DNA of 64,000 nucleotides, taken from Sphaerodactylus townsendi (taxonomy: Eukaryota). Positions 56,824-57,617 of the stretch are shown here, piece by piece. The notes beneath the pieces are model-generated. The model worked only from the letters and a program-made list of their open reading frames with translations, did not search any database and was not told the DNA's origin. The translations under genes and the position numbers were made by a program. The stretch lies in contig NC_059435.1 of assembly GCF_021028975.2 (NCBI RefSeq), positions 78,306,001 through 78,370,000 on the forward strand. Direction: 5' to 3'. Position 1 is the stretch's first letter; every line of letters starts with the position of its first letter.

Positions 56824-57617
56824 GAGAAGGGAGAGAATCAGAGCTGAGGATCATCCTTGTCGGAAGGAACGGGAGTGGGAGGAAGGCCGTAGGAAACGCC
56901 ATCCTGGGCCGGAAGGCGTTTGAGTCTGTGCCTGGCGCAAACAAGACCACGGCTGGGAAGTGCCGAAGAGGGGACGGGAACTGGAATGGCTGCAGGATCT
57001 CTGTGATTGACGTGCCAGAAATTTTTGATTCAGACGTCTGCAACCAAGACTTTCTGGTGGAAATCATGCATTGCGTCCAGCTCTCCAAACCTGGCCCTCA
57101 CGCTCTGGTACTTGTGACCCAGGCCGGCCACTTCACCACAGAAGATGAGGCAGCCGTAGAGCGAGTCCTGGACGTGTTTGGGATGGACTCCATGAGGTAC
57201 ATGATAGTCTTGTTCCCCCAGAAAGAAGATTCAGGAGGGCGCTCTGTGCAAGACCATTTACCAGATAACAAGGCCCTCCAAGAGCTGATTCTGAAATGTG
57301 GGTCTCGCTTCTGCGCTTTCAGTCTTAACGCAGCCAGCAAGGAAAGGATGCAGCAGGTCTCCGAACTGATGTTGATGCTCCAGACACTGGTTTGCAAGAA
57401 CAGAGGAGAGCCATTTGTCAACGCACTCTACACTGAGGCCAGTTTAACCGAGTCAAAGCTCAGAGGTTACGTGGCAGAAAACAGAAAAGCCCGGAGGAAC
57501 CCAGGGAAGGTGTCAGAGCCAAAGATGACAAAATTGCGGAGGATTGCTTCATGTGTTGTGGCTGTTGTGGTTCTGTCATTTACAGTTTCTAAAGCTTTTA
57601 CTTTTTCTCTAGAATAA
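56824..57617 (+). CDS. GIMAP/AIG1 domain exon with C-terminal hydrophobic anchor; predicted exon 3 of the stonustoxin-like gene
   Basis: Phase-1 acceptor cacag|GA, upstream branch-like ctctaac. ELRIILVG...GNAILGRKAFES, ISVID, PGPHALVLVTQ, CGSRFCAF; tail RRIASCVVAVVVLSFTVSKAFTFSLE. The frame is open. Confidence 0.9.

Follow-up and report, generated by a model that had tools for sequence, protein, structure and literature searches.

Pseudo-GTPases such as CENP-M and the pseudo-G domains of p190RhoGAP keep the G-domain fold under selection after their G motifs have been lost, and SEPT6-group septins are septin-class subunits with a structural role that do not hydrolyse GTP and that, like GIMAP6, keep the P-loop and bind nucleotide. 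Here we examine a window of 64,000 nucleotides from the gecko Sphaerodactylus townsendi (NC_059435.1, positions 78,306,001 to 78,370,000; positions below count from its first letter), and in it the third and last exon of a stonustoxin-like gene. Exon 3 encodes an AIG1/GIMAP domain that shares with the pseudo-GTPases the pattern of a kept fold and lost motifs and differs from them by its fusion to a pore-forming module. The tail-anchored human proteins GIMAP1, GIMAP2 and GIMAP5 have in common with exon 3 the AIG1 fold, the conserved box, the helices at the C-terminus and a hydrophobic anchor, whereas exon 3 has degenerate G1, G2, G3 and G5 motifs, a His in place of the box Arg and a position as the last exon of a perforin-superfamily gene. 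Human GIMAP6 is of the same GTPase class and, lacking GTP hydrolysis, is structural or regulatory (PMC9111091); exon 3 differs from it by a broken P-loop. Stonefish stonustoxin (SNTX) has N-terminal MACPF/CDC-like, helical and thioredoxin-like domains in common with the gecko gene, but SNTX ends in PRY-SPRY where the gecko gene, which is endogenous, has two FN3 domains, the GIMAP domain and an anchor. The reptile and caecilian stonustoxin-FN3-GTPase proteins, named stonustoxin or verrucotoxin subunit-like, share the same three exons, the helical, thioredoxin-like and two-FN3 cassette and the GTPase exon; their turtle, tuatara, caecilian and cobra members, unlike the gecko ones, keep GKTGxGKS, DTPG, LGRFT and FTRKDD and fall in a separate AIG1 clade.

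The stonustoxin-FN3-GTP-binding architecture of reptile stonustoxin homologues is already in the literature, including a transcript from Bothrops venom gland in which a single mRNA encodes the stonustoxin-like, the FN3 and the GTP-binding domains (PMC7579844). The gecko gene is also already annotated. In the searchable literature we found no GIMAP pseudo-GTPase, no natural GIMAP with a broken P-loop under selection, no gecko-wide erosion and, beyond PMC7579844, no relevant combination of stonustoxin and GIMAP. Our preferred reading, to which we give a probability of a little under 0.6, is that exon 3 is a selectively maintained pseudo-GTPase that serves as the nucleotide-independent anchoring or scaffolding C-terminal module of a perforin-like protein without a signal peptide. 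It is favoured by replacements at Lys and Ser of G1, at the Thr of both G2 and G3, at the Arg of the box and at the Asn pair of G5, in a reading frame that has been kept.

The domain matches the AIG1 profile (Pfam PF04548) over profile positions 1-207 of 212 (E 2.5e-57, 194 bits vs a cut-off of 27), which places it in the AIG1/GIMAP family; canonical fused relatives reach 221-278 bits against the same profile, and the closest solved relatives of the domain are human GIMAP1 and GIMAP2 (E ~1e-51). An earlier sequence-only reading had suggested a pseudo-GTPase from the motifs GRNGSGRK, DVPE, QAGHFT and FPQKED. These four readings are exact, and genomic contigs of two samples with the same organism label (X1 and X3) do not differ from the window at any of them. 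The consensus against which they had been judged holds as well: among 34 non-gecko GIMAPs, conservation is 100% at K14, 97% at G16, 91% at K19, 97% at S20 and 100% at D62/T63 and T131. The degeneracy itself stands, with some correction. The Glu of DVPE is a mild change, since human GIMAP1 and GIMAP2 have Asp at the fourth G3 residue (DTPD), and the unusual change in this motif is that of Thr to Val; the Lys and Asp of G4 are retained; and two further losses had not been listed, that of the switch-I Thr (G2) and that of both Asn of G5. The canonical G1-G5 set is thus absent from exon 3, apart from the Lys and Asp of G4 (Table 1). The switch-I residue (T43) is 97% conserved in non-gecko GIMAPs and is Ala in four of five geckos, with Thr only in Eublepharis, and the Gln at position 132 in G4 is invariant in geckos and found in 0% of non-gecko GIMAPs. 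The conserved box is present, with the PGPHALVLVTQAGHFT region kept, including the 90-100% conserved columns P89-T98, G101 and T104, and only the Arg position changed to His.

In G domains the phosphates and Mg are held in place by the Lys and Ser/Thr of the P-loop and by the Thr of switch I. Schwefel and colleagues are said to have identified, in 2013, the finger Arg of GIMAP7 as the Arg of the conserved box (Arg103). The GIMAP dimer surface is made up of the P-loop, the switches and the conserved box (PMC9111091), and as cited in PMC8066113 the catalytic arginine finger of the GIMAP7 dimer is supplied by GIMAP7. With all these residues changed (Lys to Arg and Ser to Lys in the P-loop, Ala for Thr in switch I, Val for Thr in G3, His for the box Arg and Ser-Leu for Asn-Asn in G5), the Sphaerodactylus domain is very unlikely to retain canonical binding of Mg-GTP or its hydrolysis, and a predicted G-domain fold that has lost residues for nucleotide binding and catalysis fits the description of a pseudo-GTPase.

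Table 1. Positions of the exon 3 features, and of the rest of the stonustoxin-like gene, in the window.
Feature	Position	Strand	Size or basis
Exon 3: complete AIG1/GIMAP domain, C-terminal helices, tail anchor, stop	56824..57617	+	794 nt
Degenerate P-loop (G1) GRNGSGRK: P-loop Lys to Arg, Mg-binding Ser to Lys	56862..56885	+	alignment
Switch-I (G2) Thr to Ala	56952..56954	+	alignment
G3 DVPE (consensus DTP[G/D/A])	57009..57020	+	alignment
Conserved box TQAGHFT; catalytic Arg-finger position is His (57129-57131)	57117..57137	+	alignment
G4 FPQKED (consensus FTRKED); Lys and Asp kept	57213..57230	+	alignment
G5 region CAFSLN (consensus CAFNN[R/K]); both Asn lost, FNN to FSL at 57318-57326	57312..57329	+	alignment
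C-terminal hydrophobic tail anchor, KLRR just before	57543..57611	+	Kyte-Doolittle 19-mer maximum 2.11
Exon 1 of stonustoxin-like gene: start codon, 33 codons + 1 base, phase-1 donor	48785..48884	+	tblastn
Exon 2: stonustoxin-like MACPF/CDC region, helical, thioredoxin-like, two FN3 domains; ends CAG/GTAAGC	51022..53127	+	Pfam
Intron between FN3 exon and GIMAP exon; rich in high-copy repeats (53285-55054, 56117-56647)	53128..56823	+	contig depth
Gecko-conserved non-coding block directly 5′ of acceptor	56579..56823	+	69-79% identity to Heteronotia, Gekko and Eublepharis introns

The exon had been described as 794 nt without stop or frameshift, and we find its frame uninterrupted from the phase-1 acceptor AG at 56822-56823 to the TAA at 57615-57617 (translation of 56823-57614), with the stretch that carries the G1 to G4 motifs (56862-57230, + strand) wholly inside it. 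Six gecko-lineage orthologues, namely five annotated proteins and a Logan contig (L009), likewise have an open frame through the G domain, with neither stop nor frameshift, and these six lineages are ~0.5-0.7 apart in synonymous divergence (dS). The ratio of nonsynonymous to synonymous substitution (dN/dS, or ω) had been named as a check on the claim, and it came out clearly below 1. Pairwise values for the gecko G domain are 0.35-0.48 (upper confidence limits at most 0.68, dS 0.49-0.67), next to 0.21-0.30 for exon 2, and maximum likelihood (ML) under GY94 gave ω 0.52 for exon 3 on the gecko tree, with ω = 1 rejected (2ΔlnL 36.3). Three-taxon arithmetic on the pairwise distances puts the Sphaerodactylus branch at ~0.32-0.39. 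The control was a pair of turtle fused genes with canonical motifs, where dN/dS is 0.38 in the G domain and 0.39 in exon 2, and therefore the gecko domain is overall no less constrained than an apparently active one; the fused model of Eretmochelys imbricata (P0040) was excluded as a control, as its gene range of 257 kb is probably chimeric. A ratio near 1 with disablements in relatives was not seen, and a young pseudogene is ruled out by dN/dS below 1 and open frames in six lineages.

Constraint is not even along the domain. At the 22 codons for nucleotide contacts ω is 0.86 and does not differ from 1, as against 0.49 (2ΔlnL 38) at the remaining 204. Each gecko deviates at 10-15 of the 65 alignment columns that are at least 90% conserved in the 34 non-gecko GIMAPs, and the deviations affect 12 of the 15 motif columns (G1, G2, G3, G4 and G5) vs 13 of the 50 others (Fisher p 4.6e-4). 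Relative to the rest of the domain, the variability of motif positions is 0.42x in other GIMAPs and 1.35x in geckos (permutation p 0.04). Some 40 scaffold columns, PGPHAL, VT, FT.ED, FG and LF among them, show no change in any of the five geckos, and the conserved box has a low local ω of 0.29-0.33. No 25-codon window exceeds ω 1, the maximum being 0.90 from switch I to G3, in a scan with low power for positive selection. These codon comparisons show the whole domain to be under purifying selection while its nucleotide-contact codons drift neutrally; with ω 0.52 and six open orthologues, the domain has been retained under selection as a pseudo-GTPase would be.

The set of eroded motifs differs from species to species, giving a mosaic (Table 2). 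In Eublepharis the Thr of switch I survives together with GKS, DTPA and KED, and Heteronotia retains GKSGSGKS and the box Arg. The sequence-only reading had held that canonical motifs in close orthologues would speak against it, and this is partly the case, in Eublepharis and Heteronotia. Since close orthologues are partly canonical, the loss of both the P-loop Lys and the Ser is specific to Sphaerodactylus, the only species with full loss of the P-loop. Common to all annotated geckos are loss of the Thr after GKSA, the G4 change of Arg to Gln (5/5) and loss of both G5 Asn, and these shared losses suggest that release of the switch began early in the gecko group, the order of motif losses being read from present-day sequences only. 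Nearly canonical Eublepharis, Heteronotia with P-loop and box Arg, and Sphaerodactylus without either make up a natural series, which could separate the roles a GIMAP fold has without GTP, such as anchoring and scaffolding, from what the switch adds.

Table 2. State of the nucleotide motifs in gecko orthologues of exon 3.
Orthologue	G1	G2 Thr	G3	Box Arg position	G4
Sphaerodactylus	GRNGSGRK	lost	DVPE	His	PQKED
Heteronotia	GKSGSGKS	lost	DTAR	Arg	TQEEE
Gekko	GRTGSGKR	lost	deleted	His	TQQKD
Eublepharis	GKRRSGKS	kept	DTPA	His	TQKED
Paroedura	GRSGRGKS	lost	DTAD	Ser	TQQAD
L009 (Logan contig)	GRTGSGKS	lost	DTAA	Arg	PWQDS

Retention of scaffold residues and of the fold had also been claimed, and both the ~40 invariant columns and a structure prediction agree with this. 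AlphaFold2, run on a 39-sequence alignment, gave a model with a mean predicted local distance difference test score of 86.8 and a predicted template modelling (TM) score of 0.79, in which switch I, G3/switch II, the G4 loop and the linker before the C-terminal helix are the blocks of lowest confidence and residues 234-262 are predicted to form a helix. Foldseek placed this model on human GIMAP2 (2xto) with TM 0.91 and a root-mean-square deviation of 2.0 Å over 222 columns, followed by GIMAP5, GIMAP1, GIMAP7 and GIMAP4, so that by homologue-guided prediction the domain would have the three-dimensional fold of a GIMAP. Its C-terminus (57510-57617) varies among geckos. A hydrophobic tail anchor is found in Sphaerodactylus and Paroedura, and the ending in Heteronotia, Gekko, Eublepharis and L009 is K-C-[C/F/R]-L-[S/N]-stop, a sequence like a CaaX prenylation box in which the Cys is the fourth residue from the stop (L001 18440-18540; L002 13460-13570; L003 46900-46925; L009 980-1024). 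In Heteronotia and Gekko the stop precedes a still recognisable relic of the transmembrane segment. The change could be a swap of one membrane anchor for another, and the Cys-x-Leu-x endings fit membrane attachment as a conserved requirement. A signal-peptide-like hydrophobic stretch was looked for by direct reading at the N-terminus of the stonustoxin-like protein and none was seen, so a tail-anchored product would face the cytosol.

From these results we infer an anchoring or scaffold role for the exon 3 domain. A tail-anchored exon of the GIMAP1/2/5 type would have become the last exon of a stonustoxin-like gene in the gecko stem lineage, and after this gain the GTP switch would have become dispensable. 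Selection would still act to preserve the scaffold in its folded form, along with the box, the helices at the C-terminus and the anchor in the membrane, and these parts would place a cytosol-facing pore-forming module on an organelle membrane and/or in a nucleotide-independent assembly.

Several observations weigh against this interpretation. An in-frame deletion of three codons has removed G3 in Gekko, the transmembrane tail is lost in three annotated orthologues (Heteronotia, Gekko and Eublepharis, where a stop cuts it) and in L009, and part of the module is therefore clearly dispensable; ω by ML is higher for exon 3 (0.52) than for exon 2 (0.35). Canonical GIMAPs dominate the alignment given to AlphaFold2, and the model speaks for compatibility with the fold and is not proof of it. 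The kept G4 Lys and Asp, together with an Arg in place of the P-loop Lys, may allow some non-canonical nucleotide binding. Finally, the junction of exons 2 and 3 (53127^56824) rests on annotation, conservation and the Bothrops mRNA, the sequencing runs found being all genomic and their contigs showing no 53127^56824 joint.

The Gekko deletion, the cut tails, the higher ω of exon 3 and the different set of broken motifs in each species could all be due to a GIMAP domain that since the fusion has been only a linker to the membrane anchor and is eroding toward loss, with the remaining constraint reflecting folding or solubility of the fusion protein. We consider this quite improbable. Over the 204 non-motif codons ω is about at the level of the canonical turtle domain, and both the invariance of the scaffold columns in five geckos and the absence of stops and frameshifts from the G domain in six lineages speak against a decaying appendage.

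Less probable again is a locked switch that binds nucleotide without hydrolysing it, as in SEPT6-group septins or GIMAP2, GIMAP5 and GIMAP6, with Arg19 and Lys20 replacing the Lys and Mg. The G3 Asp is kept along with the G4 Lys and Asp, and there is precedent among human GIMAPs: membrane-anchored GIMAP2 and GIMAP5 bind GTP without hydrolysis and are thought to form scaffolds (PMC8201404), and GIMAP6 has no GTPase activity and yet regulates GIMAP7 (PMC9111091). Against this, Sphaerodactylus has lost the Lys and Ser of the P-loop together with the Thr of switch I and the Asn pair of G5, and the neutrality of the motif codons across geckos would be unexpected for a binding pocket that is being maintained.

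The domain had been taken as fused, and the annotated protein XP_048367823.1 (stonustoxin subunit alpha-like isoform X1, 999 aa) does join exon 2 to exon 3, being letter for letter exon 1, exon 2, a junction Gly and exon 3. Its first 34 residues match 48785-48886 at 100% identity by tblastn, and exon 2 is identical to residues 35-735. Exons 2 and 3 were searched separately, the joined form being taken only from this database record, and exon 3 is present in all three annotated isoforms. Exon 2 matches PF21109 (1e-26), PF18078 (1.1e-37) and fn3 (4.2e-15), and with PF21109 and PF18078 N-terminal in the same annotated gene the product would belong to the stonustoxin-like proteins of the perforin superfamily. 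The exon 2 donor CAG/GTAAGC at 53127/53128 is a consensus phase-1 donor that matches the phase-1 acceptor of exon 3, and a donor G/GT[AG]AG and acceptor AG/G[AG] recur in Heteronotia, Gekko, Eublepharis and Paroedura, the intron between them measuring 1.5-3.7 kb. The annotated model thus splices the domain to the stonustoxin-FN3 exon, at phase-1 junctions that five geckos conserve.

We regard it as very unlikely that exon 3 is instead a separate tail-anchored GIMAP gene with its own promoter that predictors have joined through matching phases. This explanation draws on the nesting of the gecko domain among stand-alone squamate GIMAPs, on at least one turtle fusion model that spans 257 kb and looks chimeric, and on a gecko-conserved block of 150-245 nt 5′ of the acceptor that carries ATG TTG ACA TTT G/GTAG in three of five species. 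We considered a stand-alone first exon immediately 5′ of the acceptor and rejected it, as the ATG of the block is unconserved in two of five geckos, being lost in Heteronotia and Paroedura, and it is kept only as a minor rival. There is also no in-frame Met before G1 within exon 3, the donor, acceptor and short intron are kept in five species, independent pipelines predict the same junction, and the Bothrops transcript indicates that the architecture exists as an mRNA (PMC7579844). In a stand-alone GIMAP of Elgaria the first exon is 5.4 kb away, and the intron is without the gecko-conserved block. The block (56579-56823) is far longer than a branch point and polypyrimidine tract and is also recognisable in L009; it could be a splicing enhancer, an internal promoter or a 5′ exon.

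Reptiles and caecilians commonly carry the stonustoxin-FN3 cassette, and the modules that follow it at the C-terminus differ, with AIG1 (E 1e-65 to 1e-83), IIGP/IRG (1.7e-65), PRY-SPRY and weaker septin/AIG1-like GTPase matches. The three-exon layout is shared by turtle genes. A tree built from AIG1 domains unites the fused domains of the five geckos in one clade with support of 100, branching as Eublepharis, Sphaerodactylus and the three gekkonids, and this clade is nested in squamate stand-alone tail-anchored GIMAP1/2/5-like proteins with canonical P-loops, apart from the other fused domains. The tree of the stonustoxin exon groups geckos with tuatara. Since the two exons give discordant groupings, the GTPase exon of the cassette appears to have been exchanged during evolution. 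In the turtle Pangshura tecta the models P0045 and P0048 have a near-identical cassette, P0048 with an AIG1 tail and P0045 with a tail the size of that in confirmed IIGP paralogues, and other turtle paralogues end in IIGP (P0026) or PRY-SPRY (P0009). These alternative last exons in the turtle models suggest interchangeable 3′ exons in an immune gene cluster. The stonustoxin-GIMAP model of Eretmochelys imbricata (P0040) extends over several other GIMAP genes, and some of the annotated stonustoxin-GIMAP fusions in other species may be chimeric models.

A broader proposal is offered only tentatively, and we think it rather unlikely as a whole. It holds that geckos have since their family divergence kept a nucleotide-free GIMAP pseudo-GTPase as anchor or assembly module of a cytosolic perforin-like protein, and that this is one outcome of an undescribed reptile system in which splicing can place any of several interchangeable immune exons of a "sensor or switch" kind (GIMAP, IRG/IIGP and PRY-SPRY) behind one stonustoxin-FN3 "executioner" exon. 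The family is barely studied and physically couples a perforin-like module to immune GTPases, and it could point to an intracellular pore-forming defence in reptiles.

The sequence-only reading had further suggested an integrated decoy or regulatory heterodimer, in which the inactive domain would resemble a working GIMAP, be bound by pathogen effectors or by such GIMAPs and in this way control the pore-forming module; the inactive immune-domain copies that plant NLRs carry inside a larger immune protein are a conceptual likeness only, as the gecko protein is no NLR. We rate this the least probable of the explanations considered, for while the joining of reptile cassettes to IIGP, PRY-SPRY and AIG1 would fit a sensor-plus-executioner logic, geckos retain canonical GIMAPs (P0124) as candidate partners, and GIMAP6 sets a precedent in that, though non-catalytic itself, it regulates an active GIMAP (PMC9111091), no 25-codon window rises above ω 1, the P-loop and switches of the canonical dimer surface are the eroded part, and no intact GIMAP was found in the 64,000-nt window.

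Some smaller observations concern the rest of the locus. Within exon 3 the X1 and X3 contigs show two non-synonymous differences (56965 R>Q and 57315 A>T) and three synonymous ones, and the A/T polymorphism at 57315 lies inside the G5 region. Contigs with another organism label (X4) differ from the window by ~30 substituted and 30 gap letters at 52400-53266, in the 3′ part of exon 2, and over exon 3 by substitutions only, with no gaps. In genomic runs the two repeat tracts of the intron have a summed contig depth of hundred-thousands to millions. A submitter-derived UniProt model (P0134, 1055 aa) adds a 56-aa exon at 55567-55740, between the FN3 and GIMAP exons, and we found no recognisable homology for this segment. 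Weak GIMAP-like remnants (E 0.001, domain residues 91-146) are present at 42304-42461, adjoining a run of N at 42468-42639, and in Eublepharis an AIG1 exon lies upstream of the stonustoxin-like gene (contig L003, 20415-20993).

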